NCBI RefSeq assembly: GCF_018977255.1
Contig: NW_024704749.1
Location: forward strand, 2,852,001-2,916,000
Direction of reading: 5' to 3'
Origin: Callorhinchus milii
Taxonomy: Eukaryota
Length of the DNA: 64,000 nucleotides
A program made the position numbers and the translations under genes. The notes beneath the pieces are model-generated. The model was not told the DNA's origin. It ran no database searches and saw only the letters and a list, made by a program, of their open reading frames with translations. This document shows, one piece after another, positions 20,129 through 54,169 of this stretch. Positions within the stretch are counted from its first letter, which is position 1, and each line of letters starts with the position of its first letter.

Positions 20129-21681
20129 CTCAATTATGTGATAAGGTGCTATATCAAACTCAAAGATTAATATAATTATTATTAATAGCAATTACTTTGT
20201 TATAAGGTGTACTTGATCTTTTATGAAACATGAAGATTATCAATTTATTATTAAAAGTCAGTTTAGCAATAGCTGTTCTTGTTAGTGGTGGCACAATATC
20301 TAACCAGAATTACTGGGAAAAAAAGTAAGTTGTGAAATAGACAAAAAATTTTCCCATGGCAGGCAGTGAATTCAAACATAAGTGTTTGATGTTCATTCAG
20401 TTTCCTGTTCACTATTCCAGGATTTAAACATATATAAAGCATTGGAGGAAGGGACGGTTGTTTTCAGACTGTTTTGGGCACTTCAGCCACTGATCATATC
20501 TAAAACCTTGAGAGGAAGGAATGTTTGACTATGAAACACTCTTTAAGTACATGGTATTCCAGAATAGGTCAACCATCTGGAGATCACAATAACATGGGAC
20601 TGAATATGCAAGCAGAGAAAAGGGAACATTCCATTGTATGTATGTAACATTTAAAGACTGTATTGTGTGTAGCACTGTACCACCCTATAATTGTGTGTGT
20701 GTTAATGAGATTAAGCACTTACTGTGTCATTCAATTATAAACAAAGGTGTGTCAATGGAGAATGTACCCAAATTGGGCAGTGCATCTACAGACAATGAAC
20801 AAAACATTGTTCCTCCCAGTAATAGGCAGTGTTTCCATAGAGAATAAGTACATAGTATATTATTCAGTGAATGATAACAAAATATCCCATACTTGTCTTA
20901 TCCCATAAGCGCCTTCGGTCACCCTCCCATTCCTTCCCTTCCTGCCCTCCACCCCTCCTGATCCCAACCCCCAGCTTGGGTCCAGATCCCTGACTGTCCA
21001 GGGTCTTCGGACGTCATCCCGACGTGAAAAGTGGTATACATTTGTTGTAGTGTGCATCCACAGTATATTAACACAAAACATATCCAGCAAAATGCAGCTG
21101 TACAACTAAATACCTTGCAGCATTGAGTGGTGCGGGCTCATACAGGGTAGACATCTCCTGTCTATTTCATAATGGAAGAGGGAAGATCGTGTAACTAATA
21201 CTGTTCTTGGGGATATTCCATGGATTCCATGATTTTACATAGATATAGCAGACATAGATTTTACATAGAATGAAAAAAAGGCCATTAACCATCAAGTTTA
21301 TTCTTTCCAGACTCGTGCAAAATCCTATGCTGCTGTGAACTTCGCCAACCCATTCCATCTCCCCAGTCCTTAAAACAAGGAAGAAAAAACACAGAATATT
21401 GCTTCATCCCCAGATTACAATTATTCCACCCTGGTGTACAATCCTCAAAAACATGCCCCTTTGTCCCAACCCAACAATACAGAAAATATAGCAATCCCTT
21501 AGCAGAAAGAAAGAACAAGGAGAGTGAAAAGATTGAAGGATCAGGTTATTTAAACTGAGAAAGCGAGAAATTGCAATCACACATGAATGGGATTAACACA
21601 GAGTGACTAAATGAATATGCCTTGACATTGTGTGCATTTGAAACAGATGATCAAAGTTGGTTTTCTTTTTGTCCTGTGCAG

Positions 21682-21817
21682 TGGAGAACCAGTCGCACTG
21701 CGATTTTGTTAAACTGCGAAATATGCTGATCCGAACACACATGCAGGACTTAAAGGACGTGACCTGGGACGTTCATTATGAGAATTTCAGAGCCAGATGT
21801 ATCCAGGAGATGACTAG
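21682..21817 (+). CDS. SEPT5: Septin-5 exon ([44 protein letters not shown])
   Basis: tgcag|TG..AG|gtcag; 136 nt. Confidence 0.97.
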
Positions 21818-22056
21818 GTCAGTTTTGTTCTCCACCTCTTACTCAGAGCACTCATTAAACAGGATATCAGTGAATTTAGTTTGCATCACAAAAATGTGAC
21901 TAGATGCTAAAATAGTTGTCTTGTGAAGCAAAACTGATGCTTGCGGAATTAAAAATATATAATTGTCACTTTTTTTAGGCAGCTAAAATGTACTGATGTG
22001 CTCAGGGAGAGCAGAGGGTGTTGGTTTGTGCAGGCTAAGGTGTAACACATTTCAGG

Positions 22057-22289
22057 CCTGAAATTATACATAAATTTAGCCTACATGATCATTTGGTCTT
22101 CAAATTGAAGATCATGCAGAATTGTGCATATTCTTAAATGGAGTCTTAATTTGCAATCTGGTTCTGTTGAAGAATTGTTGAATACTCCCTTCCAAATTCA
22201 GGGTAAACTTAAGAATGTTCCACAATTCTACCCGATCTTCAATTTGAAGACAAAATAAGTCCTGCAGGCTAAGATTGTGTGGATTCTGG
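22057..22289. repeat. Fold-back element with ~80-bp inverted arms
   Basis: gtcttcaaattgaagatc (22096-22113) is the exact reverse complement of 22234-22251; agaattgtg/cacaattct and attcttaa/ttaagaat also pair. Confidence 0.8.
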
Positions 22290-22519
22290 ATAGTCTGCTT
22301 TCAACACAGACTGAAATAGTTCTAAAAGCTGAACCTGGAGCTGTCCAGATGCCCAGGGTACACTGAATCAGGCAACATACTCTTAATACTATATAGTATT
22401 TGCTTATGAAAAACAGTTGCTTGTAAATCTAAAAAATGACTGAAATAAATTCACTGGTTGCAGTTCTGATGGTGTCATGGATGGACCTGCAGTTTATGGG
22501 CTAGGAGGTTACTGAGTTT

Positions 22520-22625
22520 GTTGAACTCTGCCAGGCTGCATGAGGAGGCTAAATTAGCCGCAGCCCATCTGTGGTTAGGGAGGGGAAAACCAAGTAGGAT
22601 TCCTGCCCCTCGTCCCTCTTCTTAT
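22520..22625 (+). mobile_element. LF-SINE-like remnant
   Basis: ggttagggaggggaaaaccaagtaggattcctgcccct resembles the recalled LF-SINE core GGCTAGGGAGGGGAAAATCAGCCAGGGTTCCTGCTCCT. Confidence 0.5.
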
Positions 22626-22736
22626 CAAGGAAATGCCTGAACAGGAGTACAGAGACTTACGTCAATGAGGTTAAACCAAAGAAAATGATACGTTTTTCAA
22701 AAAATTAGTTGGATTTAATTTATTTTGAATTCACAG

Positions 22737-22839
22737 TAAATTGACTCAGGACAACCGAGCAGAAAGTCCACTTCCTATCCTACCACTACCAGCTGCAGAC
22801 GCAGAGACGGATAAGCTGATTAAAATGAAAGATGAAGAG
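22737..22839 (+). CDS. SEPT5: Septin-5 exon ([34 protein letters not shown])
   Basis: cacag|T..GAG|gtgag; 103 nt; this C-terminal segment is SEPT5-specific and distinguishes it from SEPT4/SEPT2. Confidence 0.96.
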
Positions 22840-23705
22840 GTGAGTGAGTGCCTGACATTTGTAATCCATGCTGAATGGAGTCTCTCTGTACGTGGTGGTG
22901 AGCGGTCATCGGCTGCGTGGAATCTCTCTGTACATTATGAATCTTCCTGGCTTCTTTTGATTGGAGTTGCTCTGTATTCACCTGATTGGCCCCAGAAAAT
23001 GTGAATTTTCCTTGGGAGCAGGTAAGCCAGGGACTCTTCAGTTAACTTGAAGTGGAATATCAGATTTGGGTCAATTTTCTGTGACCGTTTTGGTTATCCA
23101 CGTACTGAGCCAGGCAGGTTAGCAATGTGCTGTTGATAATGAACCTAGCTCATCAGCACTATTTGGAGGAGCAGACCAGTCACTACTGACTTTGGCTACT
23201 ATTACCCCGGCAAGCCAAGATCCTAATGGACAAGCATCAGAAAGCTTCCTGTCAAAGATGTCAATGGCAAACTGTGTGGTTTTAGTTCCAGCAGTACTTG
23301 CAAAGTATGCCCTGAGTTTCTGAGCCTTTTCCCTCCAGGAAAGAGTGCAAAGACAAATTTCTATGCTTATCAGGAAGGACTCTCGGCAGAACTCTTAATG
23401 ATGGGTTATTCTAAAGATGCTTATGTCAGAAGTGGGATACCAACCCACATCCCTAGAAAAAGACAGAATTCCACTGCATGAATCTGGCCCTTTAGAGCAC
23501 TTGGCCATCATGACCACTGCTGTGTTGGTATATATGTTCATTTCCTGTTGTAATTTTCCATTTAATGTTGTCATTTGTAGATTTTTTTTCAAAGGTGTCA
23601 TGACATGAGCCCCATGTACTTGGAACATTGGCCAATAGACAACCGTATGGCTATTATTTCATAGCCAACGTGTAGCAACAACTTATTGGGCCTTTCTCTC
23701 TGCAG

Positions 23706-23762
23706 CTGCGGCGAATGCAGGAAATGTTGCAGCGAATGCAACAGCAAATGCAGGACCAATGA
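23706..23762 (+). CDS. SEPT5: Septin-5 last coding exon (LRRMQEMLQRMQQQMQDQ*)
   Basis: tgcag|CTG..TGA; matches the human SEPT5 C-terminus; exon sum 1146 nt = 381 aa + stop. Confidence 0.96.
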   Translation: MRRMQEMLQRMQQQMQDQ

Positions 23763-24546
23763 GAGATGCCGGACTTCACTGAGCGAAGAACAGGATTCGC
23801 CTCCGCAGCCAAATCCAATGAGAATAAAGAGGGCGGGAAAAGAGATGGGCCACTCCTCTGGAGAATGCACTGTACAGAACCTATCACATGTTTCCTGTTG
23901 TACTGTAGAGGCAGCTTGAGGGTGACCATGTGTCCGGCCTACTTTGTCTAGTGCCACCATGTCATTTACATATCCTGCTTGTTTGTTTGGGTTTGTATTT
24001 AATATCTTGTCAGTTCAATTGAAGACCATTCGGAGACATATCTGCACCGAATGCTTATGTGGAAAGTGCTCTTTACTAATAAATGTTTCAAATGGGTCTG
24101 ACTTCAGACAGTGTTTTTTTTTTAAGGTGAGCCATACCCACGCTGGGGACTGGAATATTGTCCACTTGGTGCTCAGTGATGTCACGGTGCCCCAGGGCAA
24201 CTGTGCTCAAGAACAGTTCAGATAAAACCTGTCCCTTACATTACTTTTGAAAGTGTATCTGATCCAAAGTGCTTCTGAATGCTATGCCTTACAGCAGTGT
24301 CCAACTCTATCTTCTTGCAGTTTGAAATCAGCTAAAAGTGAATGTGCATCGGCTCTCTATTGTGAACTCTTCATCCTCCACATTGAGGTGCACATGAATT
24401 GAGGATCCAAAATGGTTTCATTGGAAGTGCTCAGACAGAGATCAAGCTCCTGTTCTAACGTACCATTGGTTCATTTCTCCTTCCCAATACAGAAAGACTT
24501 TCCCACCAACGTATATATTACTGTGCCACTCCAACCCCGTCACAGA

Positions 24547-30463: not shown

Positions 30464-31054
30464 ATGTTCCAGATGATGACCAGACCACAAAGTATGTTCC
30501 TCATCCTCTCTCTGATCCCAATGGCTGCATTCCGGTGCTTGGAACATTGCAATTGTTCTGGCACCGTTGTTGACTGCAGTGGACAAATGCTAAACCTCAG
30601 CACTCTCCCCAAGAGCTTCGCTGCCACCACAACACAGATCCATCTGAAAAACAACAAGTTATTCTCGATCCCCAATGGACTGTTTGACAACCTGCAAAGC
30701 CTGAGGTCGATTTCACTGGACAATAACCCATGGGTTTGTGATTGTAATATATTGTACCTGAGATCCTGGCTCCTTAATCAAGACAGAAATTTGCAGGATA
30801 AGAATATAATGTGTTATCTGCCAGTTGAGCTTCGTGATAGACGGATCTTGTATCTAACGGAAGATGAGATTGTCTCCACCTGCCAGAACTGGTACTGTAC
30901 AGTTGCTCTGATTTGCCAGATTGGACTCTTCATCTTTATCATCGTTCAAGCCATTCTTTTGTTGCTTGTTATCATATTTCTGAGAAGATTTGAAGGTTTT
31001 TCCAAAGCAGCCATTGTAATTCCAAAAGGAGATAACTTTAAGAGTACAATGTGA
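30464..31054 (+). CDS. GP1BB: Platelet/thrombocyte glycoprotein Ib beta chain
   Basis: 196-aa ORF: signal peptide, LRRNT CxxxCxC..C, LRR, LRRCT NPWxCDC..C, YLTEDE motif, juxtamembrane Cys145, TM with Gln152, short basic tail; acceptor ttgcag at 30453; lies downstream of SEPT5 as in mammals. Confidence 0.93.
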   Translation: MFQMMTRPQSMFLILSLIPMAAFRCLEHCNCSGTVVDCSGQMLNLSTLPKSFAATTTQIHLKNNKLFSIPNGLFDNLQSLRSISLDNNPWVCDCNILYLRSWLLNQDRNLQDKNIMCYLPVELRDRRILYLTEDEIVSTCQNWYCTVALICQIGLFIFIIVQAILLLLVIIFLRRFEGFSKAAIVIPKGDNFKSTM

Positions 31055-31879
31055 ACACATTACGCGAACTTAATTATCTGCTATCAAACCTAACAGTTAA
31101 TTGCTTGGCTTGTCAGACGTTCTTTACTGGGCTTCCAACCTTTGCACTCAAGAGAATTTTCATCTCCTTTGAATAGTGATGTGAATGGCCACCTTCTGTT
31201 TAAAACAGCTGGGATACATTATGCTGATCTTTTTCTATTGCCCCGTTGCAAACTGCTGTCCAGTTAGATACACTGTTCTGAATAAGTCTTAAACTTCCTT
31301 CAGCTTAATTTCCACAAAACTGAAGCCATCTTCTCTCTAGCACCTACTCACTTTTGACTCTGACTATATCACGCTCTCCTTTAGTCCATTCATCCAATCA
31401 CTGATCAAGTCTGTTTATATCCACCTCCAGAATATTACCTGCTTCTGTCTCTACCTCACAACAACGAAGCCCCAACCCGCATCCATCATTTTATCACCTC
31501 TGAACTTCATTTTTGTACTCTTGTAATGTAAAAGATCCTATCATCAAATTTTTCAGAATTCTGTAGCTTTTACTTTTTACTTTTCAATACCAGGCTCCTC
31601 GCGTCCATCATTCCCATCATCACCTCTTTGACCTCCTGAAATCCTAATCCTCTGTCTACTCTCTCCAGTCTTCAACGCAGACCTGTTCCATGTACTCCAC
31701 TCCTTCCACCTCAGCATTAGTGAATACGATTTCTACCTCTTTGCTCCACTCTCTGAAAATCTCTCCTAAAATTATTCTGGCTTCCACACTCCCTCTCTAC
31801 TTTCAAAGCCTTTCCCCAATTCCACCTTTGGTCACCTCCCTCCTAATACTCCCTCCTTTTAAACAGAAGGTAGCCATTC

Positions 31880-32400
31880 ACAACAACAACAACAACAAGA
31901 TTCCATTTATAGAGCATCTTTCACGTCGGGAGGACGTCCCAAAGCGCTGGACAGTTGGGTCAGGACCTGAGCAGGGGGGAAATGGTCAGGGTGAGGGGAG
32001 GGAAGGGAGGGAGCGAGGAGGTGGGAAATGGTCAGGGTGAGGGGAGGGAAGGGAAGGGTCGAGGAGGGGGTAGAGAGTCGAGAGAGGAGCTGAAGGCACG
32101 GTCAAAGAGAAAGGTCTTGAGACCGGCCTTGAAGGAGGAAAGGGAGGAAGCGGCGAAGGCACTGGGGGATGGAGTTCCAGAGCCTCGGGGCTGAGAGGCT
32201 GAAGGCCCGGCCACCGATGGTAGGGCGGTTGGGGATAGGGATGTGGAGCAGAGTGGAGCCAGAGGAACGGAGGGTACGGGCAGGTAGGTAGGGGGATAGT
32301 AGGTCGGAGAGGTCGGTGGGAGCGAGGCCGTGAATGGCCTTGTAGGTGAGGGTGAGGATCTTGAATTCGATATACCCTTCCTATCTTCTACCTCGCTGAA
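31880..32400 (-). mobile_element. Young L2 LINE 3' fragment
   Basis: Minus ORF RPFTASLPPTSPTYYPPTYLPVPSV.. near-identical to 36800-37150; (TGT)n tail at 31880-31897. Confidence 0.9.
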
Positions 32401-33104
32401 GTCCATGCTTCGTCTCTGCCAACTGCTTTGAGGTATTTTGCTACTTGAAAGGCGCTATATAAGTGTAAGTTGTTATTGTTGTACTATTATATATTTATAT
32501 TACTGATTTGTAGAAGCACAAGTTAATATGGTGAATATGTTGCTCACAAATATGATCATGTACTCAGATGGTTTAGTAAAATTAAGGAGTTGTATTACTC
32601 TTCCAATTCAGGGTAAGAATGTGCTGTCAACTGGATCATATTCTATCTTATAGCAGCTGAAAGTTTAAGGAAATTTATGTTAAAAATAAACTCAGTGCCT
32701 ATAAACTTAAATGAGTGATAAATATGTAACTTCTGGTCAAATATTACTATGTATATAAGGTGTCTCCACAGTTTGTAATTTCTGTTCTGTCTATACAGAA
32801 TAATGCTTATATGCAGACATGAGTAGAGTAGTTGAAATGGCCTCAGTTTCCCTGAAAAATATGAGTCTGAATCTAAATCTAGATAAAAATCAAGAGAACA
32901 AGATTTTCTCTCTGCTAACAATCCGTCTAACATGACATGGATTTGGAAGAGTTAACACTTGCTTCCCAGTAAGCATGAATGAAAGCCCAAGAAACAGAGA
33001 GGTTATAGAGATGATATTTGTAGGAACAATCAACCCTAATGCATTCAAGGCAGTTTCTCGGTCAATTTCACAACACTATGTCTAGTGGTTCATTTCACAA
33101 TTGT

Positions 33105-33320
33105 AATAATAATAATAATCCTTGCATTTGATATAGCGCTTTTCACGTCGGGAGGACGTCCCAAAGCACTTCACAGAACACACTGTAAAGTGAATTGACT
33201 GTATATTTGTGGGCGAACACGGCAGCCAATTGCACACAGCAATGTCCCACAAAGAGTCGTAGATTGAAAATGACCAATTTATTATTGTTTTTTTTTTGGA
33301 GGGATTATTATTAGGCTATT
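33105..33320 (-). mobile_element. 5'-truncated Deu-type SINE
   Basis: Reverse complement of the Deu body and (TAT)n tail. Confidence 0.85.
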
Positions 33321-33649
33321 ATTATTAGGATTATTATTAAGCCAATTCGATAACAGTTTTAAGAGAGCAGTAGATATTTGGGGAGGACAAGGTTGCAGAG
33401 CTTTGGGGAGAGAGAGCGGGGGAGTGGGATTGAATTGGATAGCTCTTTTCAAAGAGCTGGCACAGACATAATAGGCCAAATGGCCTCCTTCTGTGCTGTA
33501 TAATTCTATAATTCTCTTTTGGAATAGTGCCATGGGATCTATGACATTCACCTTGTATGGCAGATGGACCTTGCTTTAACGTATCTATGAAGGATAGCAC
33601 CTCTAAGAATGCAGTACACACCAAGCACTGTACTATGCCTCCTCCAGCA

Positions 33650-34550
33650 TCGACTCCAGGCCCGCCGATGATCTATCAGCTTGTCTGGATGACTGCAAAC
33701 TTCCTGCTGCTGAAAGTGGACAAGACGGAAGCCATACTCCTTGGCTCCTGTTAACGTCTTCACTCCTGCAGATCTAAACTCATCAACCTCCCTGGGCTCT
33801 CTCTCAAACTCACCGAACCAGTGCGCAATTTAGGTATCCGGTTCAACCGGTTCAACCCTGAGCTGTCCTTCCTCACCCACATCTGGTCTCTGACCAGGAC
33901 TGCCTTCCTCAACCTCTGCCACATTGCATGCCTCTGAATGTACCTTACCCCAAAAGCAGCCAAAACCCTTGTGCATGCATTTGTTACCTCCTGCCTGGAT
34001 TACTCAAATGCACTCCTTGCCTGGTCTCCACAGCTCCACTATTCAAAAAATCCAATTCATTCAGAGCTCTGCTTCCTGCATTCTTACCCAGACCAAACTC
34101 CGTACCCTCATCTCACCAGTTCTGGCCCAGGCTGCACTGGCCCCCCATCACCAAATGGATCGACTTCAAGATTCTCACACTTATGTTCAAATCCAATCAC
34201 TCCCTGGCACCTCTCTACTTCTCTGACCTCCTGACTCTCCAATCCACCACCTGGCATCTTTACTTGACTGGCATCGGCCACTTGCTTGTCCCATGCACCC
34301 ACTGCTCCACCATTGGAGGTCACGCTTTCAGCCACTACCCCCTGAAACTATGGAAAACTCTCCCTCAATCCCTCTGTCTTGCCCTCTCTCTCCCCTTTTT
34401 CAAGTCCCACCTGAAAACCAACCTTTTTGACCAAGCTTACGGTCACCTCCCCCACCCTTCCCAGCTCGGAGTCAGACTCCACTAGTATTAAGCACTCTGA
34501 GATGCCACCCTGCGTGGAGGGTGCTTATATAAATGCAAGTTGTTGGAATG
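33650..34550 (+). mobile_element. L2 LINE 3' fragment (RT C-terminus, degenerate)
   Basis: Frames give FLLLKVDKTEAILLGS, YLTPKAAKTLVHAFVTSCLDYSNALL and HWPPITKWIDFKIL; tail gcttatataaatgcaagttgttgg. Confidence 0.85.
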
Positions 34551-35054
34551 TCTACTTCGACTATATGAATTCCAAGTCCCAAAATCCTTTACATCTCATG
34601 TCGTGCCTGTTTCTTTCTGAGTCTTCTCGTTTTATTTATCTCACATCCACTGTATTTCGCTCAGCGAATTGCCCCTCCCTCCTTTCTCTCATCTTTACTT
34701 ACTTTTCTCCTCTTCGTCTACCACTTCTGTATATTCTCCAATTCTCTGACTCTCTATTTTACCTTTCCATTATCTCTTTACTTATCCACACTTTTGCTTG
34801 AATCTCATTCACCCATCTCATGTTGATCTCACACACTCTTCCCTCTCGCACACTCGTTCTTTGTTATTTTTCTCTCGTGCCATGAGCTCAAAAGTGGGCT
34901 GTACGCACGTGCAGAAGTGAGAGAGTGGGATCAGTAAGCCTCACCTCGCTTCCTGACAAGTGGTTGGTCCAGATGATCATAACAATATGCATATTTTTAA
35001 AAATCAGTAATGTAACGGCACAACGTCTGGTCTTTCTCCTCTTCTGTTTAGGAA

Positions 35055-35112
35055 TGCTCACACTAGGGACTGCTCACACTAGGAACTGATCACACTAGGG
35101 ACTGATCACACT
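35055..35112 (+). repeat. 16-bp tandem repeat x3.6 (tgmtcacactagggac)
   Basis: Units start at 35055, 35071, 35087 and 35103; a partial fifth copy lies near 35127. Confidence 0.9.
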
Positions 35113-36276
35113 TGCTCTCCTTCCTGTCACACTAGGGCTAACATGGTTCTCTTCCAACACAACCTCTGGCATTCACATCCATGGCGGGACACAGTACGTA
35201 TGAGACACGCTGAAACTGGACGGAATGGCAAGTGAGCGAGCGACCGAGGAAACAGGATGCTGGCCCTGTGATGTGCCTGAGCGCTGAGACTCTATGGGGA
35301 AGGTACATGAGTTAGGATTATTGGGTCCAAGGATATTTGGCACTGTCACTTTTCAGGCTCTTACTCGCTGTTTTAATGACTGGGTTGTGTAGGAAAGAGA
35401 GTCGGACTGACTGCTTGTCCCTTACATTTATTATTAAGTTTAATTTTCATCTGTTTATAAAGCTTAATGTTCAATGTTCAGATCTTTATTAAGTTTCGTG
35501 TGCCATTCTGCTGAAACGTTTGTAAATCAAGCTTAATATATATAGAAATACTTCATCAGAATGGGCCAATTTGCTAAAGTATTTCCATATCAATACCATG
35601 CAATTATTTCCAAGAAAATATGTTTAGCCTAACATACTTTAAATTTCATTGACATCTGTTTGTGAAATTTATTTATGCGTGTGTGGCCTTGGATGGAGTA
35701 AGGAAAAATCTGTCTTTAGCATTCAGCCAAGGCGTGGGTATGGCTAAGATGGTATTTCATTGACAGGTGTTCCTTCGGGGCTTCTCTCGAAATTTACGAG
35801 CTATAATTTTTCTAATGGATATATGTTCTCACAGAATAGGCTAATACTATGTAATTTATACGTTTTGATTCTTCCTTTGTCAAGGAAAAAGGAAGAAGTC
35901 TGAAGAATGGATTGGCCTCGACCAAACATACATATGGATGTTGTTGCAGATGAGTTGTTTCTGGGCTTCTTATCCTAGTTTCACATAAATAATCCAATCT
36001 TTAATATTATATTTAATAATGACCTAAATTATTTGTATATTGTATAGCAATGTGAAAGTTTGCAATAAAAGGGGAACACATTAATGTGAGACACATGCAA
36101 CTTTGACCCATTGATATAGCGACACCTGCTGATGTCAATAAATCAGCTAAGATGTTGCCAGGCAGAAGTTGGAACCAAAGGTTTCTCAACAGCAGACTTA
36201 AAGGACGAAATCCACTAGTTTGTCATTACATTTAAATTGTGCAGATTTGCGGAAATGTTTAATTTCAACTTAACTG

Positions 36277-37148
36277 AAATTGAAACTGAAAAACTGAGGC
36301 CCTCCTGATTGGCTCACGTCAGCGCCTCCGCACCTCAGGCGCTGACACCATCAGCATCCAAGGCTGCACTCTCCACCTCTCAAAGCCAGTCAGGAACCTC
36401 GGCGTTTTGTTCGACCCTGAGCTGTCCTTTCTCCCTCACATCCGCACCACAACTGGCACCGCCTTCCATCACCTCCGGAACATCGCCAGACTACGGCATT
36501 ACCTCACCCCTCACGCTGCTGAAACCCTGGTTCACGCCTTTGTCACCTCAAGGCTGGACTATGGGAACTCTCTCCTCGCCGGCCTTCCCGCCACCTCCCT
36601 CCACAAGCTGCAGGTCATTCAGAACTCGTGTACTGTCCCGCACCAGGCTTCGGGACCACATCACTCCCACCCTCGCTCGCCTCCACTGGCTCCCCATCCC
36701 CCAGAGGATTGATTTCAAGATCCTCATCCTCACCTACAAGGCCATTCACGGCCTTGTTCCCTCCTACCTCTCCAACCTACTATCCCCCTACCTACCTGCC
36801 CGTACCCTCCGTTCCTCTGGCTCCGGTCTGCTCCACGTCCCCCGCCCCAATCGCCCTACCATCGGTGGTCGGGCCTTCAGCCTCTCAGCCCCCAGGCTCT
36901 GGAACTCCATCCCCCAGTACCTTCGCCTTGCTTCCTCCCTTTCCTCCTTCAAGGCCGGTCTCAAAACCTTTCTCTTTGACCGAGCCTTCAGCTCCCCTCT
37001 CGACTCTCTTCCCCCTCCTCGCTCCCTCCCTTCCCTCCCCTCACCCTGACCGTTTCCCCCCTGCTCGGGTCATGACCCAACTGTGCAGCGCCTTGGGACG
37101 TCCTCCTGACGTGAAAGGCGCTTTATAAATGGAATCTTGTTGTTGTTG
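36277..37148 (+). mobile_element. Young L2 LINE 5'-truncated insertion with 7-bp TSD
   Basis: Encodes KTEALLIGS..FDPELSFLPHIR..HAFVTSRLDYGNSLL..HWLPIPQRIDFKIL; TSD ttaactg at 36270-36276 and 37149-37155; absent from the paralogous site of other clusters. Confidence 0.92.
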
Positions 37149-37627
37149 TTAACTGGGAAGTTTTTTTTAAGAAACAAGCAACTTACGAATTAAAACTGCA
37201 TTCAGGATTCCCCCCTCCCTCCCTCCCTCCCTCCCACCCTCCGATTCCAGACAATATTAACTTTAAGACAAAACGATCTTACAGCCTAAGACTAGATGAG
37301 ATTTTGAGTCTTCGAAGCCTCCAGTAAGACAATATGTCTGTAAACCAAATCCATAAAATGATCGCTATATTATGTTAAACAAATCTGCAGAATAATGCAA
37401 GTAAGATGAAAACCTCAAGGTTTGACTAATCGAAAAGAAAACATGGAAGAAAATGAGGGAAGAAGACAATGTGGAGACATTTTATTATTGTTCGATATTT
37501 GTGTAATATGATACAAGGAGAACATGACGTAAAAATCAACCAAGGATTCAAGCAAACGATATGAACTGCGAATTCATTGTTAGTTACTTGGGAAATTTAT
37601 GACAAAATGAACATAATCAACAACATG

Positions 37628-37806
37628 TTACAAAACAATTATTATTATTAAAGGTAGATTGTCAATGTCACCGCCATCTACAGTCCACTCGACCTCCACA
37701 GCTCCCGGGATAAAATCATTCACCAGACACACCAGGGTCGCCTGGCTCTTTGCTGTGATTTGATCTGGTGAAGGCGGAAGGACAGTCACCGAAGGTCCCT
37801 GTGGTT
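37628..37806 (-). pseudogene. Ig lambda-type C exon relic (3' half deleted; no V upstream)
   Basis: PQGPSVTVLPPSPDQITAKSQATLVCLVNDFIPGAVEVEWTVDG then runs into the 3' UTR; ~215 bp deleted relative to 42174-42388. Confidence 0.92.
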
Positions 37807-39239
37807 CTGGAAGGAAAAGACTTTGTACTCAGATAATGTCCATTATTTGATAACACGAAGGACAGTTGAAAACTAAATATCAAATGTTTGTATCAAATAC
37901 TGTAATGTGTTCTTGTCTGTTGACAATAATATTGAACAGTGACAATGTCCGCCTATAAATGTATTAAATCATTGTGATTTTTTTTGTTAATGAGGGTTGA
38001 TCACCATATACTCTATAGCTTATTATACCACCTGTAGATTCTCACGAATACATTTACGAAATTAAAAATTGCAACCATCAGGAATGACAGCGGACACTAA
38101 ATATCATGTCACAGGGAATATTGCCGGGAGCAGCTCATTGAAAATGCAGTAAAACTTTAGGATTTTTAATTATATCTCTGATAAAACTAATTCACAAGTG
38201 AGAGAACGGGCAAAAAAAATGCAAATAACTGACAGTGTTTGCAACTAAAGGCTCTATTCCAATGAATTCCCTGTAAACGTACATCAGTCGCCTCTATTTC
38301 CAACTATGCCTAATTTTGAGAAGAAATGTGTTAACCTTTGATTACTTTTGGGAGTTTCAATAATCGCCAAACAATAATCGCCAAATAATCGCTGGATACG
38401 ACTTGTAGTTTATACAATGTTCTGTCCTCAGTCGGGAAGAAACTCGATTCAAGATTTACTACTGTGCGGCTTTACTACTGTGCGGATAAGCAATTACGGA
38501 CTTCAACAAACTCGAAGAAGTTCAGGATAAAAATAACAACAAATTACATTTGTATGGCCCCCTTCACTTTGACCACTTCCATCTGCACAATGATAATAAT
38601 AATAATCCTTGCATTTGTTAGAGCGCCTTCTAACATCTTCGAGACGTCTCAAATCACTTCGCACAATATACCGCAAAGTGAAATTACTATATTTTATGGA
38701 GGAAACGCGAGCGAAAGAGAATTAAAAGCCCCACAATCGAAAAGATTTTTGCATACAATCTCCTGGTTCAATACATCATGAAATACAATGATCCATAAAT
38801 AAACACAACCAGAACATTAACAGTTATAGTGATAACGAATCGGTTTGAAGAGGCCACATTGTCAGTTACAGCTGATCGGGATAATTGGAACCCCCCAAAT
38901 TATTTTATCGCCCCTTCTCTAAGAAAATCACCTTTTAGACTAACAATGTTTTACAGACACCAGCGACAGATAGTGAAAACGTTGAAAATCCGGTGTAAAA
39001 AAGCCGAGGGTTCGTTTTCCTCAAATGCTGCATGAAGGAAAAGTCAAAACATTAAGTATCTGAGAAGCACAATGAGGTTCAGCAGCTGAAGAGAGTGATT
39101 GTCAATTTCACAATGTTTTATTGGGCGCGTTAAATATACTGTATTGTATTTATAATAAATATCGCTGCACAGTCTACGGGAAATACACATCTTGAATTTC
39201 CACAATTTATATAACATTGTTCTTTGTACTTTTGCACAG

Positions 39240-39365
39240 GAACATAGGAATTAGGAGCAGGAGTAGACCATTCGGCTCCTCGAGCCTGTCACGTCATTCA
39301 ATAAAATCATGGCTGATCTTCTAACCTAACTCCAACTGCTCGCCATATCCCTTAATCCCTCTATC
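39240..39365 (-). mobile_element. CR1-type 3' fragment in cluster 1 J-C intron
   Basis: ggaacataggaattaggagcaggagtagaccattcggctcctcgagcctg..atcatggctgatct; same family at 49718-49870; absent from clusters 2 and 3. Confidence 0.6.
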
Positions 39366-40809
39366 CTTTTATTTCTGTTTTGACCAGACTGAGCCGCCAC
39401 TCAACCCGTGTCTTCACTGAGCGCTGACTCACATCTGACCATTTTGCAGCAACCTGTGATGAAACACATGTAACACTACTGGGTCTCTTTTGCTAATTGC
39501 AATGTTGCTCCCCTCAGCGACATCAAACGCGGAATTGGGGGAAAATAAAGCATTTTAAACAATCAGAAATCCGAATACAACTTTGAGATTAAAACGATAT
39601 ATACAGACGTCTGTTAATGGGAGAAATATCACAGTGGTTCACAATCACTCGCTGAGCCGACTGTAATATTTGAATTATTCTAAAGCATTATGCTGATTAT
39701 GCTGATGTAAAATAATGGTCAAGGAAACCTCTCTTAGAGTTATTCCCAGCCACCTGGGTACCAGTTGAAGAGTATCACTCGGTCTCTTGGAAGTTTAAAT
39801 TCTTTAAACATTAATTTAGTTACAGAACAGAAACATTTCCACGCTATCCCGTTTCCTCTGAGATTTGAACCTCTCACCAATCGGTCCATTGTAGCCCAAG
39901 GAGAGTCACCCTATGAAAAGCTGCTTTTATTGAGCTGGAGATTCATTAAATATCACCTCATGCTTACAAACTGGGGAAAAATATTGGAAGTAAACATATA
40001 AATCAGTTCATCTGGTACGAGGAGACTTGTCTTCGATCCCACGTCTAAAACTGTTACCTCATTTCACTGCAGTAGCTAATTCTTTACCAGGATGTTTAGA
40101 CGGTGTTGCATTTATTTAGTTTCGTTATTTAGTTTAATATCTAATGTTTATTTAACTCTTAAGGTATAACCAATCACTAACCCTGATGAGTCTTTAATTT
40201 TCGTGATGGAAGTTGCAACCAGTTATTTTTATTAAACTTACTTATACTGTGAAAACGGTATTCAGATCTGTGTGTGTATCAATTCGGCCGTCGCCGCTAC
40301 AGTTTATACGGACCCCCAGACCATCTACTCGATGCCCACCTGCCTCCAAGGCGCCTTCAGGTTTTTATTACGTTCAATGTTCAGATCTTTATTAAGCTTA
40401 ATGTGCTATTTTGCTAAAGTATTTGCATAGCAATGACATATGATTATTTCCAAGAACATATGCTGTTTAAGGTTAAAACTCGTGTTGAAGTTTCATTGGT
40501 ATGTGTTTGTAAAGCTAAATATTTAAAAATGTTTTTGTGGCCTTTCTAATACGTTAGAATAACTATGAAAAAAGTCTGTCTTTGGCACTCAGCCCAAGGC
40601 GTGGTATCGGCTAAGATAGTATTTGATTGACAGACGTTATTTCGGGGCTTCTCTTGAAATTTACGAGATAGTGTTTTTCTAATGGGCGTATCTTCTCACA
40701 AAATAGGCTAATATTATGTCATTTATATGTTTTGACTCTTATTTTGTCAAGGAAAAAGGAAGAAGCCTGAAGTATGGATTGGCATCGAACAAACGTATCT
40801 ATAGATGTT

Positions 40810-40953
40810 CTGACGAATGGTCGTGGACCCGAAACGTTGATTCACATTCCTTTTCCACAGATGCTGCGACCTGCTGAGTGTCCCCAGAGAATTCTGTTTT
40901 TTTTTCAGATTTCCATCATCTGCAGTATTTTGCCTTTTTTTTTTGCGTTTTAC
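40810..40953 (+). mobile_element. Short HE1 SINE/HER1 LINE-like 3' fragment with 13-bp TSD (orthologous copy 61977-62119)
   Basis: ctgacgaa.ggtc..gacccgaaacgtt..cacagatgctgc.acctgctgagt..tttcagatttcca.catctgcagtattttg; TSD atctatagatgtt at 40797-40809 and 40954-40966. Confidence 0.7.
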
Positions 40954-41110
40954 ATCTATAGATGTTGTTTCTGGGCTTCTTATCCTAGTTCCACTTAAAC
41001 AATCCAATTTTTATATTATATTGAATAACGACCTTCAAAATTACTTGTATAATGTTTAACAATGTTGTAGTTTCCAATAAAAAGGATGTTGATGCAGCAA
41101 CATCTGCTGA

Positions 41111-41420
41111 TAATCCTTGCATTTGATATAGTGCTTTTCACGTCGGGAGGACGTCCCAAAGCGCTTCACAGAACACACTGTAAAGTGAATTGACTGTATA
41201 TTTGTGGGCGAACGCGGCAGCCAATTGCGCACAGCAATGTCCCACAAACAGTCGTAGATTGAAAATGACCAATTTATTATTGTTTTTGGTTTTGGAGGGA
41301 TTATTATTAGGCTCTGTGTGGAGTAAGGAAACTTGCCCAAGGTTTCGCCCTCTGCCTGGAATTGAACTCAGGTCTCTCACTTGCAAAGCGAGTGCTCTAA
41401 CCACTGAGCTACAGGTCTCC
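41111..41420 (-). mobile_element. tRNA-Ala-derived Deu-type SINE, full length, cluster-2 specific
   Basis: Reverse-complement full copy; ctgat flanks both sides; absent at the paralogous site near 62320. Confidence 0.92.
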
Positions 41421-42204
41421 ACTGATGTTAATATATCAGCTGAGAAGTTGCCAGGCGGAAGTTGAAAGCAAACGTTTCTGAACAGCAGACATCAAGCACA
41501 AAATCCATCAGATTGTCATAAGACTTAAAATTGCGTAGATTTGCGGAAATGTTTTAATTTCAATCTCAATTGGGAAGTTGGTTCTTTTTTAAGAAATACG
41601 GTCAAGCGAATTACAAATTAAGACTCTATTCAAGATCCCCTCTCTCTCCCTCCCTCCCTCCCCCTTCCCTTCGATTCCAGACCATATTAAAGTTGAAGAG
41701 AAAACGATATTTCAGTTTGAGACGAGGTGGGATTGTCAGACTTCGAAGCCCCCGGAGAGCACAACACAGAATGAAATCTAATGTTGGGGAATGTTCTACA
41801 CCTGTGCTTGACAAGTAGTGTAATATTTCCTCCTGTAAAACAACTTATCTATAAACCAAATCCAAAAAAGTCAAAGAAGTGCAGAGTAATTAATACAAAC
41901 AAGATGAAAACCTCATGGTATGAATAAGCGGAAACAAAATCTGGAAGAAACTCAACGACGCACAGAGGCCAATGCAGAGACATTTTATTATTATTATTCG
42001 ATATTCGTGTAATATGACACATGGAGAACTCGTACAATTCAAACTAAGAATTCCAGCAAACGATATGAACCGCGGATTCATTGTTAACTATTTGGAAAAT
42101 TTATGACAAAATTAACAAAATCGACAAATTATTATAAAACACAAATATTATTATTAAAGGTAGATTGCCAATGGTACATTCGACTATCGGTGCACATTCC
42201 TGAT

Positions 42205-42527
42205 TTAGGTACAACTGGATCTGGCGATGCTTTTCTCGAGCGGAATGGCCAGAGTCTGGTGTTTGACCACACAGGAATACAGGTCGTGTGACTCCCACTC
42301 GGAGGTTGGCAGAGTCAGATAACTGCTCACACTGTACGTGTTGTCCGCCTGCTGTTTGATCGCACTCGTTTCAACACCTTCACTTCTGGCACTGCCATCC
42401 ACAGTCCACTCGACCTCCACAGCTCCCGGGATAAAATCATTCACCAGACACACCAGGGTCGCCTGGCTCTTTGCTGTGATTTGATCTGGTGAAGGCGGAA
42501 GGACAGTCACCGAAGGGCCCTGTGGGT
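42205..42527 (-). CDS. Ig lambda-type (type II/NS3) light-chain C exon, cluster 2
   Basis: ttccag|AC CCA CAG GGC..; C1-set Cys-Trp-Cys (TLVCLV, EWTVDG, YSCVV), terminal SSCT*; 323 nt in phase with the VJ donor. Confidence 0.97.
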
Positions 42528-44866
42528 CTGGAAGGAAAGGATTTTGGATTCAGATAATATCCATAATGTGATAACACGAAGGACAGTTGAAAATTAATTA
42601 TCAAATCACTGTATGAAACATTTCAACGTGTTCTTGTCTGTTAACAATAATGTTGAACAGTGACAATGTCCGCCTATAAATGTATTAAATCAGTGAGAAA
42701 TGGTTAATTTTGATAAGAATTCCTCGCCATATCCTCTGTATCTTATTATACCAGCTGTAGATTCCCACGAATGCATTTACGAAATTGAAGAATACAATCA
42801 ACAGAAACGACAGCAGATAATAAATATGGTGTCAGAAGGAATATTGCCGGGAGCAGCTGATTGAAAGCGCGGTTAAACTTTAGGATTATTAATTATATCT
42901 CTGACCAAGTTAATTCACAAGCCATAGAACGGGCAAAAAAAGGCAATAATTGATTGTGTTTGCAACTAAACTCTCCATTCCAATGAATTCCCCGTAAAGG
43001 TCCATCGAGCGCCTCGACTTCCAACTATGTCGAATATTGTGTGAACCTTCGATGACTTTGGGGAGTTTCAATAAACGCTACACAATGGCTGGACACGACT
43101 TGTAGTTTCTATAGTTTTCTTTCCTCAGTCGGGAAGAACTTCGATTCAAGCTTCACAACTGTGCGGCTGAGCAATGATGGACTTCAACTAATTAGAAGAA
43201 GGTCGGGAATAAAATAATAATAATAATCCTTGCATTTGTTAGAGCGTATTGTAACATTTTCGAGACGACTCAAATTACTTCACAATATACACGGTGAAGG
43301 GAATTGACTATATTTTGTGGAGGAAACGCGAGCAAAAGAAAATTAAAAGACCCACAATCGGAAAGTTGTTTGTGTACAATCTCCAGGTTCAGTACTTCAC
43401 GAAATAAAACGATCTATTTCTAAATACAACCAAAATATTCACAGTTATAGTGATAACGAATCGGTTTGAAGAGGCCACATTGTCAGTTACAGCTGATCGG
43501 GATAGTTGGAAACCCCAAATTATTTTATTCGCCCCTTCTCTAAGAAAATCACCGTTTCGACTAACAGTGTTTTACAGACACCAGCGACAGATAGTGAAAA
43601 CGTTGAAAATCCGGTGCAAAAAAGCCGAGGGTTCGTTTTCCTCAAATGCTGCATGAAGGAAAAGTCAAAATATTAAGTTCTTGAGAAGCACAATGAGGTA
43701 AAGGTTCAGCAGCTGAAGAGAGTGATTGTCAATTTCACAATGTTTTATTGGGCGCGTTAAATAAATATTGTATTTATCATAAATATCGCTGCACAGTTTA
43801 CGGGACATAAACATCTTGAAATTCCACAATTTATATAACATTTTTCTTTGTGCTTTTATTTCTGTTTTGACAAGACAGAGCCGAAGCTCAACCCGTGTCT
43901 TCACTGAGCGCTGATTCACATCTGACCACTTACAGCAACTTGTGACGAAACACATGTAACATTACTGGGTGTCTTTTTCTAATTGCAATGTCGCTCCCCT
44001 CAGCGACACCAAATGCGGAATTGGGAGAAAATAGAGCATTTTAAACAATCATAAATCCAAAAACAACTCTGCGGTTAAAAACATAATATAGAGACATCTC
44101 TTAATGGGAGGAATTCCCATAAATTCCCAGTGGTTCACAATCACTCGCTGAGCCGACTGCAATATTTGAACTATTCCAAAACAATGGATTAGATGTTGAT
44201 GTAAAATAATGGTCAGAGAAACCTCTCTTACAGTTATTCCCAGATATCTGGGCATTAGTTGAAGAGGGTTACTCGGACTTTTGCAAGTTGGAATTCTTCA
44301 AACATTAATTTAGTTACAGAACAGAAACATGTCCACGATATCCTGTTCCCTCTGAGAATTGCGCCGATCACCAATCGGTCCATTGGAGACCAGGGAGAGT
44401 CACCCTGTGGAAGGCTGTTGTTTCACTTGTGCTGGAGATTCTTTTAACTATCACCTCATGGTTACAAACTGGGAAAAAGATTTGAAGTAAACATAATGTA
44501 CATAATGTTATTTTTGAAGTTTACCACCATTTAACTCCTCTTGAATAATTTCATTCCTGCATCCTCCCTTTTGCCTGTACCCGATTTCTGCACTATCCGC
44601 CTTAATTCTTCAGAGATTCACAATGAAACTCAGGGTTCACATGTTTGTTACTTCAAAATATCCGAATTACACATTAAAAAATCTTCACGAAAATTATGTC
44701 CAGATGCGAATATTATAGGAAACGGGCGAAACACTATTGAAGACAGAGCGATGCTCAGACAAAAAACATTTATACTGTAGAATCTTTAAAGTAGAACCAG
44801 ATCAAAATAATTATTGGAAAGTCCAAACCCCCACATGCAAAGTGCACAATGTCGAAGATCACTTAC

Positions 44867-45211
44867 TTTTCAGATTCAGTATAGTCCCTTTACCGAACAG
44901 GAAGGGATACGGACTGGTGCTTAATTCCGCACCACAGAAGTATTCGGCGGCGTCCTCCGGTTGCACACCGCTGATGGTTAAATGCATGTTCGATGAGCCT
45001 TTAGAACCAGTGAATCGATCAGGAATTCCCTGACCTGTGGTGCCGCTTTGATACCAAACAAACAGAGGGGCGCTGCCAGGCTTCCGCTGGTACCAGCTCA
45101 CCCAATAGCTGCCCAGACTGCCTCCGGACATGGTGCAGGCGATCGTGACCGTGTGTCCCGGGGTGGTTGAGATGGACGGTGGCTGAGTCAGGGTAACAGC
45201 TGCAGTTGTCC
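44867..45211 (-). CDS. Germline-joined VJ exon, Ig lambda-type light chain, cluster 2
   Basis: TAAVTLTQPPSISTTPGHTVTIAC..WYQRKPGSAPLFVW..GIPDRFTGS..EDAAEYFCGAELSTSPYPFLFGKGTILNLK|gtaagt; open frame, no RSS between V and J. Confidence 0.97.
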
Positions 45212-45301
45212 CTGGTGAGATAACAAGTCACAAATAGGTCACATTGTAGAACTGTACAAAGTGAATTTAATGTATATCAGTTCGGATTCCACAGCGCTTA
45301 C

Positions 45302-45350
45302 CATGCAGATACAGGAGTAGGGCCACTGGAACTCGGAGCCAATCGCCCAT
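45302..45350 (-). CDS. Leader exon, cluster 2 (MGDWLRVPVALLLYLH)
   Basis: 49 nt, phase-1 donor G|gtaagc; leader+VJ+C = 717 nt = 238 aa + stop. Confidence 0.93.
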
Positions 45351-45475
45351 TCTTAACATTTTGATGAAGATCAGAGAGATGAGAGATTTTCAAGACAAAT
45401 GACACTTTCCTGCTTCTTTGCAAACATCTCCTTAAGAACCATCAGGTGATGCAAGTCCAATTGAATTGATAAACT

Positions 45476-45483
45476 ATGCAAAT
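45476..45483 (-). promoter_or_regulatory. Ig promoter octamer ATTTGCAT, cluster 2
   Basis: Exact octamer in light-chain orientation ~125 nt upstream of the leader ATG; conserved in cluster 3. Confidence 0.85.
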
Positions 45484-53846: not shown

Positions 53847-54169
53847 TTAGGTACAACTGGATCTGGCGATGCTTTTTTCGAGCGGAGTGGCCAGAGTCTC
53901 GTGTTTGACCACACAGGAATACAGGTCGTGTGACTCCCACTCGGAGGTTGGCAGAGTCAGATAACTGCTCACACTGTACGTGTTGTCCGCCTGCTGTTTG
54001 ATCGCACTGGTTTCCACACCTTGACTTCTGGCACTGCCATCCACAGTCCACTCGACCTCCACAGCTCCCGGGATAAAATCATTCACCAGACACACCAGGG
54101 TCGCCTTGTTCTTTGCTGTGATTTGATCTGGTGAAGGCGGAAGGACAGTCACCGAAGGGCCCCGCGGGT
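53847..54169 (-). CDS. Ig lambda-type C exon, cluster 3 (open frame; partner V disrupted)
   Basis: ttacag|AC CCG CGG GGC..SSCT*; 323 nt; 6 aa differences from cluster 2. Confidence 0.93.

Follow-up and report, generated by a model that had tools for sequence, protein, structure and literature searches.

Type II (NS3, lambda) light-chain genes of the sandbar shark, ratfish, skate, and nurse shark are arranged as mini-clusters, multiple tandem units whose V and J segments are already fused in germline DNA, and lambda/type II genes have been described as germline joined in all species studied (PMC5192425). In amniotes, the IGL locus (22q11.2 in human; PMC13113880) is of the same isotype according to V phylogeny and the literature, and it shares a chromosome with GP1BB, but it rearranges, and its RSS-flanked V and J-C units lie megabases from that gene, whereas in the shark, pre-joined cassettes make up an array only kilobases away from it. 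Sterlet and gar resemble the shark array in having true lambda outside tetrapods with a defined flanking gene, and differ from it in that the lambda cluster of the sterlet and the C-lambda pseudogene of the gar adjoin IFT81 (human 12q24), the locus being a single cluster or a pseudogene, with RSS in the sterlet (PMC5985310). The shark counterpart of mammalian lambda has been settled mainly by V-region trees, C-region trees mixing kappa and lambda (PMC5985310), and large surveys currently do not tell light-chain types apart (PMC13320880).

We analyzed a stretch of 64,000 nucleotides from the elephant shark Callorhinchus milii (the window), which carries a septin gene followed by GP1BB on the + strand and a light-chain array on the - strand. 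The array shows no essential difference from the known type II mini-clusters, of which it is the elephant shark version, and it brings no new kind of gene or mechanism. New are the identity of its immediate neighbor gene and the finding that, at its edge, intact units occur together with retroposon-hit and truncated ones. We consider it likely that the window holds the junction of a SEPT5-like septin and GP1BB, in that order, with the near end of the type II array, and that this junction descends from a linkage that the gnathostome ancestor already had.

Septin, GP1BB, and the adjoining spacer

The genes on the + strand and the spacer that follows them are as follows.

13916..23780, + strand: septin gene, probably SEPT5 (motif and ORF scans, PDB matches)
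~13916-14003, 14953-15048 (P-loop), 16207-16326 (DTPGFGD), 17076-17210, 17805-17924 (AKAD), + strand: septin coding exons, 5' group
~18890-18985, 19525-19608, 21681-21818, 22738-22839, ~23700-23780 (coiled-coil end, stop), + strand: last five septin coding exons
30464..31054, + strand: GP1BB (platelet glycoprotein Ib beta), intact single-exon CDS, 196 aa
31055..37317, no strand: intergenic spacer between GP1BB and the array, repeat-rich and N-free

Motif scans recovered the GTPase motifs G1, G3, and G4 of the septin, the last as AKAD, while motif and ORF scans of the window located no septin exons 5' of ~13916. Septin-2 and Septin-1 were the top PDB matches (E ~1e-63 to 1e-64), ranking above Septin-7, -9, -3, and -6, which places the gene in the SEPT2 subgroup (SEPT1/2/4/5). 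Its end and the start of GP1BB, both on the + strand, are 6.7 kb apart; in human, SEPT5 lies directly upstream of GP1BB, also on one strand with it. Subgroup membership and the position beside GP1BB together point to SEPT5 as the probable identity. The SEPT5 call of the earlier note is confirmed as to the subgroup and the position; orthology to SEPT5, and not to SEPT4, SEPT2, or SEPT1, is probable by position. An exon scan found no septin exons within 10 kb of GP1BB in other species, so that the septin-GP1BB tandem is not confirmed elsewhere.

The GP1BB product is 99% identical to the UniProt C. milii entry “Glycoprotein Ib platelet subunit beta” (E 4.9e-123) and contains the Pfam domains LRRNT and LRR; vertebrate GP1BB matches contain Pfam GP1BB_C. 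Its identity to elasmobranch proteins is 61 to 67%, six of them named “platelet glycoprotein Ib beta chain” and one an unnamed catshark protein. Judged by sequence, the ORF is orthologous to named GP1BB.

N runs occur in the window only at 18011-18151, inside a septin intron, and at 49582-49717, leaving 18152-49581 unbroken. The layout proposed from the letters alone, with GP1BB ending at 31054, a first C relic 6.6 kb and a first intact C exon 11 kb further on, both convergent with GP1BB, and no N gap between 18151 and 49582, was borne out by the ORF coordinates and the N-run scan: the two distances measured from the GP1BB stop are 6,616 and 11,154 bp, and the relic and first intact C exons are both on the - strand. 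Within the spacer, retroposon-tail copies occupy 31885-32371 and 36288-37150.

Light-chain mini-clusters and their isotype

Starting from the GP1BB side, the array consists of a truncated relic, an intact cluster, a retroposon-hit cluster, and a third unit that leaves the window, all on the - strand.

37318..39998, - strand: relic cluster (tblastn, stop-to-stop reading, blastn colinear with cluster 1)
41984..41989, - strand: cluster 1 AATAAA polyadenylation signal, ~220 nt past the C stop
42205..42527, - strand: cluster 1 C-lambda exon, intact, stop codon included (Pfam C1-set 2.9e-28)
44867..45211, - strand: cluster 1 germline-joined VJ exon (Pfam V-set 6.4e-17)
45302..45359, - strand: cluster 1 leader exon, MLRMGDWLRVPVALLLYLH plus a split Gly codon
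45476..45483, - strand: cluster 1 octamer ATTTGCAT, ~120 bp upstream of the leader ATG, candidate promoter element
53850..57746, - strand: cluster 2, pseudogene, with intact C exon (53850-54146), leader (~57555-57612), and octamer (57739-57746)
61497..64000, - strand: cluster 3, partial, with 3' flank and intact C exon (63079-63375), its VJ lying past the window end

Ig C1-set exons were recognized at 42208-42504, 53850-54146, and 63079-63375, all on the - strand. In cluster 1, direct reading of the exon structure and Pfam gave one V-set and one C1-set domain with a split leader. One open frame spans its VJ exon, beginning at FR1, passing CDR3, and closing with the J motif FGKGTILNLK ahead of a GTAAGT donor, and direct reading of this exon (44867..45211) and its flanks found no RSS; the J-C intron measures ~2.3 kb. 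The splice model agrees with light-chain proteins of Hydrolagus and C. milii in nr and with an annotated H. perlo protein, and the whole chain has a protein match at E 1.6e-151, beyond chance.

The remaining units show different degrees of decay. In cluster 2, the VJ exon is broken into 56897-57127 and 57369-57497 by a ~240-bp retroposon tail (57128-57368) that ends in (TTG)n. What survives of the relic is the 3' flank, a C exon reduced to its first 38 codons (37670-37783, with the acceptor region to ~37810; Pfam C1-set 2.4e-11 over half of the model), and the J-C intron. Compared by blastn with cluster 1, it has an internal deletion corresponding to 42174-42386, and the comparison found neither a VJ exon nor a leader or promoter in 37318..39998.

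The cluster 1 octamer coincides with the end (45483) of the region marked in the earlier note. Cluster 2 repeats the ATTTGCAT octamer at the matching place (57739-57746) and has its polyadenylation signal at the same offset as cluster 1. Octamers are not enriched across the window (10 found versus 5.6 expected), and it is their conserved position that suggests a promoter element. Each cluster would then be its own transcription unit on the - strand, with an octamer promoter, a split leader, a joined VJ exon, a C-lambda exon, and a polyadenylation signal. Since VJ is already joined in the germline, such units need no RAG recombination; as known shark biology suggests, diversity would come from how many clusters there are and from somatic hypermutation. 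Birth and death of units appear to drive the evolution of the array, one being intact, one killed by a retroposon, one truncated, and one seen in part.

The spliced cluster 1 product shows 96% identity to the product of a light-chain cDNA from C. milii, 81% to the Hydrolagus colliei light chain, and 61 to 63% to the “Ig lambda chain” of the sandbar shark, Carcharhinus plumbeus, the type II prototype. The leader differs by one residue from the N terminus of the cDNA-derived light chain, and the whole cDNA-derived protein has ten differences from cluster 1, about half of them in or beside CDR3 and the others scattered. This cDNA may derive from cluster 1 after hypermutation or from a sister unit. 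V and J are also contiguous in Heptranchias, Heterodontus, Pristis, catshark, and a second C. milii locus. With its open VJ exon and its 61 to 81% identity to named type II/lambda chains, the array consists, on sequence grounds, of chondrichthyan type II (lambda) clusters that carry a germline-joined VJ, as had been read from the letters alone.

We also built trees of the V and C domains. The V tree, whose only non-lambda members were macaque kappa and Pristis V genes from a second chromosome, grouped chondrichthyan type II with tetrapod V-lambda against those two (support 90/89). In contrast, the backbone of the C-domain tree was a polytomy in which lambda and kappa were not separated, so that a lambda identity based on C-domain phylogeny was dropped; C-kappa and C-lambda were likewise unresolved in Guselnikov 2018 (PMC5985310). 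In the phylogenetic check proposed in the earlier note, the V part, within that sampling, leaned toward lambda, and the C part did not separate lambda from kappa. Pairwise, the cluster 1 C exon scores 88.5 bits to human lambda C versus 76.4 bits to human kappa C, while the ranking of whole-chain scores in PDB was uninformative on isotype for both C and V. In the trees, the Pristis light-chain genes on the second chromosome have a non-lambda V and a long-branch C. Another isotype (sigma-2/type I) is a likelier identity for them than displaced lambda, and they are probably not unlinked type II clusters of the kind raised in the earlier note.

The GP1BB-lambda junction in cartilaginous fishes

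GP1BB and lambda are on one chromosome in all 13 chondrichthyans with data, C. milii and 12 elasmobranchs (Heptranchias, Heterodontus, Mustelus, Pristis, Mobula birostris, M. hypostoma, Narcine, S. canicula, Leucoraja, Amblyraja, Hypanus, and Hemitrygon), where sharing of a chromosome in the elasmobranchs means that both genes were on sequence records of equal size. Coordinates cover five species, and in each of them lambda lies 4 to 156 kb downstream of GP1BB: besides C. milii, 4.1 kb in H. perlo, 106 kb in catshark, 147 kb in Pristis (GP1BB at 10.81 Mb and lambda at 10.95 Mb on CM019871.1), and 156 kb in Heterodontus. The two genes are convergent in four of the five; one catshark lambda gene is on the strand of GP1BB, in tandem with it, which rules out a universal convergent orientation. 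Heterodontus additionally keeps a GP1BB pseudogene 6 kb 3' of a lambda C exon and convergent with that exon, and therefore a duplicated copy of the junction.

A 6.3-kb spacer full of retroposon copies is the type of sequence in which assemblers err, and the elephant shark assembly might have wrongly joined GP1BB to the array there. Such a misjoin is effectively excluded: no N is present in 18152-49581, the duplicated Heterodontus pseudogene lies beside a lambda cluster, in 12 of 12 elasmobranchs both genes are on one chromosome, and, because the independent H. perlo assembly repeats the arrangement 4.1 kb from GP1BB, the junction is not an assembly artifact. The GP1BB-lambda junction is ancestral for cartilaginous fishes.

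In the papers searched, shark lambda was nowhere tied to GP1BB, SEPT5, or 22q11. As a conserved neighbor, GP1BB gives independent and easily checked evidence for the assignment of shark lambda, and it is a fixed landmark by which the lambda array can be found and delimited in any cartilaginous-fish assembly.

MHC paralogues and the linkage in bony vertebrates

The C. milii scaffold NW_024704749.1 has been reported to carry all huMHCpara-9 hallmark genes together with an IgL lambda cluster (Verissimo 2023, PMC10751288), a placement repeated by Ohta 2025 (PMC12227049), and both papers interpret MHCpara-9 as linked to MHCpara-14. The text and supplements of the two papers, apart from Supplemental File 9 (the scaffold annotation), do not mention SEPT5, GP1BB, or chromosome 22. 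We found C. milii lambda matches at ~3.08 Mb on the 24.7-Mb scaffold MU249839.1, and the published cluster is very probably the array of the window. In contrast to the published reading, the nearest neighbors here are orthologues of 22q11.21 genes.

The array could then be primarily part of the chromosome 9/14 MHC paralogue, that is, of a primordial antigen-receptor complex, with SEPT5 and GP1BB as bystanders and the resemblance to 22q11 uninformative. The hallmark genes on the C. milii scaffold speak for this, as does Pristis, where the GP1BB-lambda pair would lie between C5 (9.9 to 10.0 Mb) and NOTCH1 (18.7 Mb) if CM019871.1 is “Chr23” (PMC10751288, Suppl. Table 1). However, in catshark the chromosome with lambda and GP1BB measures 313.6 Mb while the MHCpara-9 genes are on chr21, and in white shark the contig with lambda measures 147 Mb while the MHCpara-9 genes reach 170.9 Mb on chr8 (PMC10751288, Suppl. 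Table 1). Because the chromosomes do not match in these two species, the MHCpara-9 association is not constant, and since the 313.6-Mb catshark chromosome cannot be chr21, the linkage to GP1BB, found in 13 of 13 species, is the more constant of the two. We therefore regard the bystander explanation as quite improbable, and the published chromosome 9/14 reading is qualified in that the nearest and most constant neighbors of lambda are 22q11.21 orthologues.

Outside cartilaginous fishes, GP1BB and IGL are on one chromosome, again as sequence records of equal size, in the lizards Podarcis muralis (43,033,198 bp) and Hemicordylus capensis (20,671,332 bp), a linkage computed at the chromosome level only, with all amniotes counting as one evolutionary observation. 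Human GP1BB lies in 22q11.21, in the DiGeorge interval, ~2 to 3 Mb from IGL. Because the junction is ancestral in cartilaginous fishes and amniote IGL is on the chromosome of GP1BB, the junction would most simply be a remnant of a linkage between lambda and a 22q11.2-type block that already existed in the gnathostome ancestor, which would lend positional support to type II as the orthologue of tetrapod lambda. Among the genes placed near the shark array, which cover its GP1BB side, there was no further 22q11 gene such as TBX1, MAPK1, PPM1F, or TOP3B, and this weighs against that reading.

Alternatively, lambda might have reached GP1BB in the cartilaginous-fish stem by a rearrangement of its own, the amniote state being a coincidence or the outcome of one large ancestral chromosome; if so, the shared chromosome says little about orthology. 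Only two lineages, Chondrichthyes and Amniota, are compared, the genes are kilobases apart in sharks versus chromosome scale in amniotes, ray-finned lambda is reported beside IFT81 and not GP1BB (PMC5985310), and antigen-receptor clusters are known to move and duplicate, an example being the second light-chain family on another Pristis chromosome. Against this, the chance of a random placement at ~2 to 3 Mb (the human distance) in a 3.1-Gb genome is ~0.002, the genes are syntenic in the two squamates as well, and the lambda identity of type II is separately backed by V phylogeny (our V tree; PMC5985310). An independent origin of the two linkages thus seems rather unlikely, and we infer that they are homologous.

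Under the preferred reading of an ancestral linkage, the earlier note's argument that type II is the orthologue of tetrapod lambda by position is kept as useful evidence, since C-domain trees fail to part kappa from lambda, with the amniote side given at the chromosome level only. Its proposed synteny comparison found support in the 13 chondrichthyans and the two squamates, and ray-finned lambda beside IFT81 (PMC5985310) did not fit. The ancient GP1BB-lambda linkage is well supported. The data do not reach as far as the phrase that the locus “stayed at this address”, because amniotes are compared at the chromosome level, ray-finned lambda lies beside IFT81, and the published placement is MHCpara-9; since jawed vertebrates first arose, the lambda locus has probably kept about the same address. 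The switch between germline-joined clusters and a rearranging translocon that the earlier note adds would follow from known biology.

The MHC-paralogue and 22q11 readings are compatible if the 22q11.2 block once sat on that proto-chromosome.

We put forward only tentatively, as a possibility, that the SEPT5-GP1BB/lambda junction has been a microsyntenic anchor for more than 420 million years and that an IGL-bearing block of the 22q11.2 type was once on the proto-chromosome of the human chromosome 9/12/14 MHC paralogues. If true, the lambda locus would be physically tied to the primordial antigen-receptor/MHC complex, and lambda in MHCpara-9, ray-finned IFT81 (12q24), and human 22q11 would be reconciled in one ancestral map.

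Gene order and light-chain units

The genes of the window are of known kinds and ordinary for a cartilaginous fish. A motif and ORF scan located a septin gene on the plus strand, followed by GP1BB, and all the immunoglobulin pieces lie on the minus strand:

14959, plus: septin, G1 motif GESGLGKST
16288, plus: septin, G3 motif DTPGFGD
about 17860, plus: septin, G4 motif AKAD
end near 23780, plus: septin, C-terminal coiled-coil exon
30464-31054, plus: GP1BB, intact ORF with Pfam LRRNT and one LRR
37318-39998, minus: relic cluster, the unit nearest GP1BB; its 3' flank, C region, and J-C intron are colinear with those of cluster 1
42527-42205, minus: cluster 1, C exon, after a 2.3-kb intron; AATAAA about 220 nt downstream
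45211-44867, minus: cluster 1, VJ exon, open from FR1 through CDR3 and the J motif FGKGTILNLK to the donor GTAAGT
45359-45302, minus: cluster 1, leader exon, followed by a short intron
45483-45476, minus: cluster 1, octamer ATTTGCAT
53850-54146, minus: cluster 2, intact C exon
57128-57368, read on the minus strand: cluster 2, ~240-bp retroposon tail with a terminal (TTG)n
63079-63375, minus: cluster 3, C exon with 3' flank; the rest of the unit is past the window end

The best solved-structure matches of the septin GTPase-exon string were Septin-2 and Septin-1 (E about 1e-63 to 1e-64), with Septin-7, -9, -3, and -6 ranking behind, and the gene is therefore a member of the SEPT1/2/4/5 subgroup. 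It is probably SEPT5, to judge from its location: GP1BB follows it on the same strand after 6.7 kb, an arrangement shared with human SEPT5. The UniProt GP1BB of Callorhinchus milii shares 99% identity with the GP1BB of the window; six elasmobranch entries called platelet glycoprotein Ib beta chain and one unnamed catshark protein share 61 to 67%.

Cluster 1 is a complete unit, and its V and J are germline-joined, since a single open exon runs from FR1 through J. The retroposon tail interrupts the V exon of cluster 2 exactly at the CDR1/FR2 border, making this unit a pseudogene; its leader and octamer, like its C exon, are intact. In the relic, an internal deletion of ~210 bp removes most of the C exon, and the VJ exon, leader, and promoter are absent. 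The earlier note had placed this relic 6.6 kb and the first intact C exon 11 kb past GP1BB, in the opposite orientation and without a gap, all of which is correct; the window has only two N runs, at 18011-18151 and 49582-49717. The first falls within a septin intron, between the exon at 17805-17924 and the one at about 18890, apparently with no exon missing.

Once spliced, cluster 1 encodes a chain that shares 96% identity with a cDNA-derived C. milii "immunoglobulin light chain," 81% with a Hydrolagus colliei chain, and 61 to 63% with the type II prototype, the "Ig lambda chain" of the sandbar shark. The J-C splice inferred for cluster 1 (...LNLK/NPQGPSV...) matches the Hydrolagus protein and an annotated Heptranchias protein. 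In every cartilaginous fish studied, V and J of lambda (type II, NS3) are fused in the germline (PMC5192425), and a published table pairs elephant shark lambda with type II (PMC5985310, Table 2). In a tree of V-J domains, chondrichthyan type II and tetrapod V-lambda formed one group, with macaque kappa outside it (support 90/89), while the C-domain tree was a polytomy without kappa/lambda separation, in agreement with the published observation that C-kappa and C-lambda branches intermingle (PMC5985310). By sequence, lambda identity would have good evidence in V and weak evidence in C, which makes positional evidence worthwhile.

Linkage of GP1BB and lambda in cartilaginous fishes

The size of the contig carrying each protein match was used as a chromosome fingerprint, and GP1BB and type II genes were compared within each species. 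In twelve elasmobranchs, both were found on identically sized contigs:

Contigs carrying both GP1BB and type II genes (bp)
Heptranchias perlo: 48,464,211
Heterodontus francisci: 83,741,193
Mustelus asterias: 109,010,392
Pristis pectinata: 45,060,308
Mobula birostris: 250,740,734
Mobula hypostoma: 252,427,829
Narcine bancroftii: 321,486,706
Scyliorhinus canicula: 313,568,160
Leucoraja erinacea: 33,294,918
Amblyraja radiata: 38,239,757
Hypanus sabinus: 167,937,546
Hemitrygon akajei: 179,570,447

Among the species with chromosome-level assemblies, all close type II matches fell on that single chromosome. Coordinates from four elasmobranchs placed a lambda gene downstream of GP1BB at these distances:

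H. perlo: 4.1 kb, convergent, germline-joined gene
Heterodontus: 156 kb, convergent
Pristis: 147 kb, convergent
Catshark (LR744030.1): 106 kb, same strand

Convergent orientation is therefore not universal, as the catshark gene lies on the GP1BB strand. It is followed there by an uncharacterized gene with a 614-aa product without a Pfam match. Heterodontus (CM071058.1) also carries a GP1BB pseudogene, disrupted by stops and frameshifts (positions 19851-20546 of the stretch retrieved, L004), whose position is 6 kb 3' to a lambda C exon, convergent with it and 156 kb from the functional GP1BB. The two GP1BB copies have 68% nucleotide identity, flanks included. The pseudogene and its lambda cluster are a duplicated fossil of the convergent GP1BB/lambda junction.

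An assembly misjoin between GP1BB and the array in the elephant shark is not credible, given the recurrence of the junction across elasmobranch assemblies: the linkage in twelve species, the coordinates in four, and the duplicated junction in Heterodontus. The junction is older than the holocephalan-elasmobranch divergence of about 420 Myr ago (PMC3964593). We found no statement on the shark lambda-GP1BB neighborhood in the searchable literature, where it appears to be unreported; it is of moderate interest for comparative immunologists.

Chromosomal affiliation of the lambda locus

In bony vertebrates, chromosome-level linkage of GP1BB with annotated lambda chains was found in Podarcis muralis (43,033,198 bp) and Hemicordylus capensis (20,671,332 bp). 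Human GP1BB lies in the DiGeorge interval at 22q11.21, some 2 to 3 Mb from IGL, the tetrapod lambda locus; the probability of such a distance under random placement in a 3.1-Gb genome is about 0.002. The published location of human IGL is 22q11.2 (PMC13113880). Taken together, the amniotes are a single evolutionary observation. The only published neighbor of true lambda in ray-finned fishes (sterlet IgL3 and a gar pseudogene) is IFT81 (PMC5985310). In human, IFT81 is located at 12q24.

The earlier note had read the junction as ancestral 22q11 linkage. This stands in part: the positional case for lambda orthology is real and now much stronger than that note could know. One possible alternative is that the lambda array arrived independently beside GP1BB in stem chondrichthyans. 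Ancient linkage of lambda with a 22q11.2-type block is, we consider, the best explanation and quite likely. The locus may also have kept its address unchanged and switched between cluster and translocon organization, as that note proposed.

A second alternative is that the array is primarily affiliated with the MHCpara-9/14 region (MHC paralogue regions named after human chromosomes 9 and 14), which may be compatible with ancient linkage. The C. milii scaffold NW_024704749.1 holds all the hallmark genes of the human chromosome 9 MHC paralogue together with an IgL lambda cluster (Verissimo et al. 2023; PMC10751288), and our C. milii data fit that placement, with a further portion of the array near 3.08 Mb on the 24.7-Mb scaffold MU249839.1, which very probably carries the same array. 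The Pristis data, with GP1BB and lambda at 10.8 to 10.95 Mb of CM019871.1, probably fit as well, the pair being 0.8 Mb from C5 if this is the published Chr23. In the catshark, GP1BB and lambda lie together on a chromosome of 313.6 Mb and the MHCpara-9 genes are on chr21; in the white shark, the contig with lambda measures 147 Mb and MHCpara-9 has chr8 coordinates of >170 Mb (PMC10751288, Suppl. Table 1). The association with GP1BB is thus the more constant one. Ohta et al. describe the distribution of Ig miniclusters across the genome as poorly known (PMC12227049). GP1BB, septin, and chromosome 22 are unmentioned in the text and text supplements of these two papers, a body that apparently leaves aside the C. 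milii scaffold-annotation supplement.

Further light-chain stretches and repeats

Three further units, spaced about 12 to 13 kb apart, were found in C. milii at 3.07-3.09 Mb of MU249839.1. Their nucleotide identity to the units of the window was 78 to 81% in V regions and about 95% in C exons; C is therefore far more homogenized than V in this array. Pristis pectinata has a second germline-joined light-chain family (CM019878.1, 6.07 Mb), on a different chromosome from lambda. Its V is distant from lambda and sigma-like, with a long CDR2/FR3, and its C forms a long branch within batoid lambda in the C tree; either the family belongs to sigma-2/type I and this C placement is an artifact of the tree, or its C exon was exchanged.

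Seven Rfam tRNA matches in the window (2020, 3395, 4749, 19822, 26718, 41352 on the minus strand, and 49891) were rejected as tRNA genes; they are the heads of a ~310-bp tRNA-derived SINE family dispersed in the septin introns and the array. A second repeat family (31885-32371, 36288-37150, 47778-48266, and 60092-60483), probably a LINE or SINE tail, has long proline/serine-rich pseudo-ORFs ("FLFDRAFSS..."). Its 3' end is common with the cluster 2 insert, and it is present also in the MU249839.1 part of the array.
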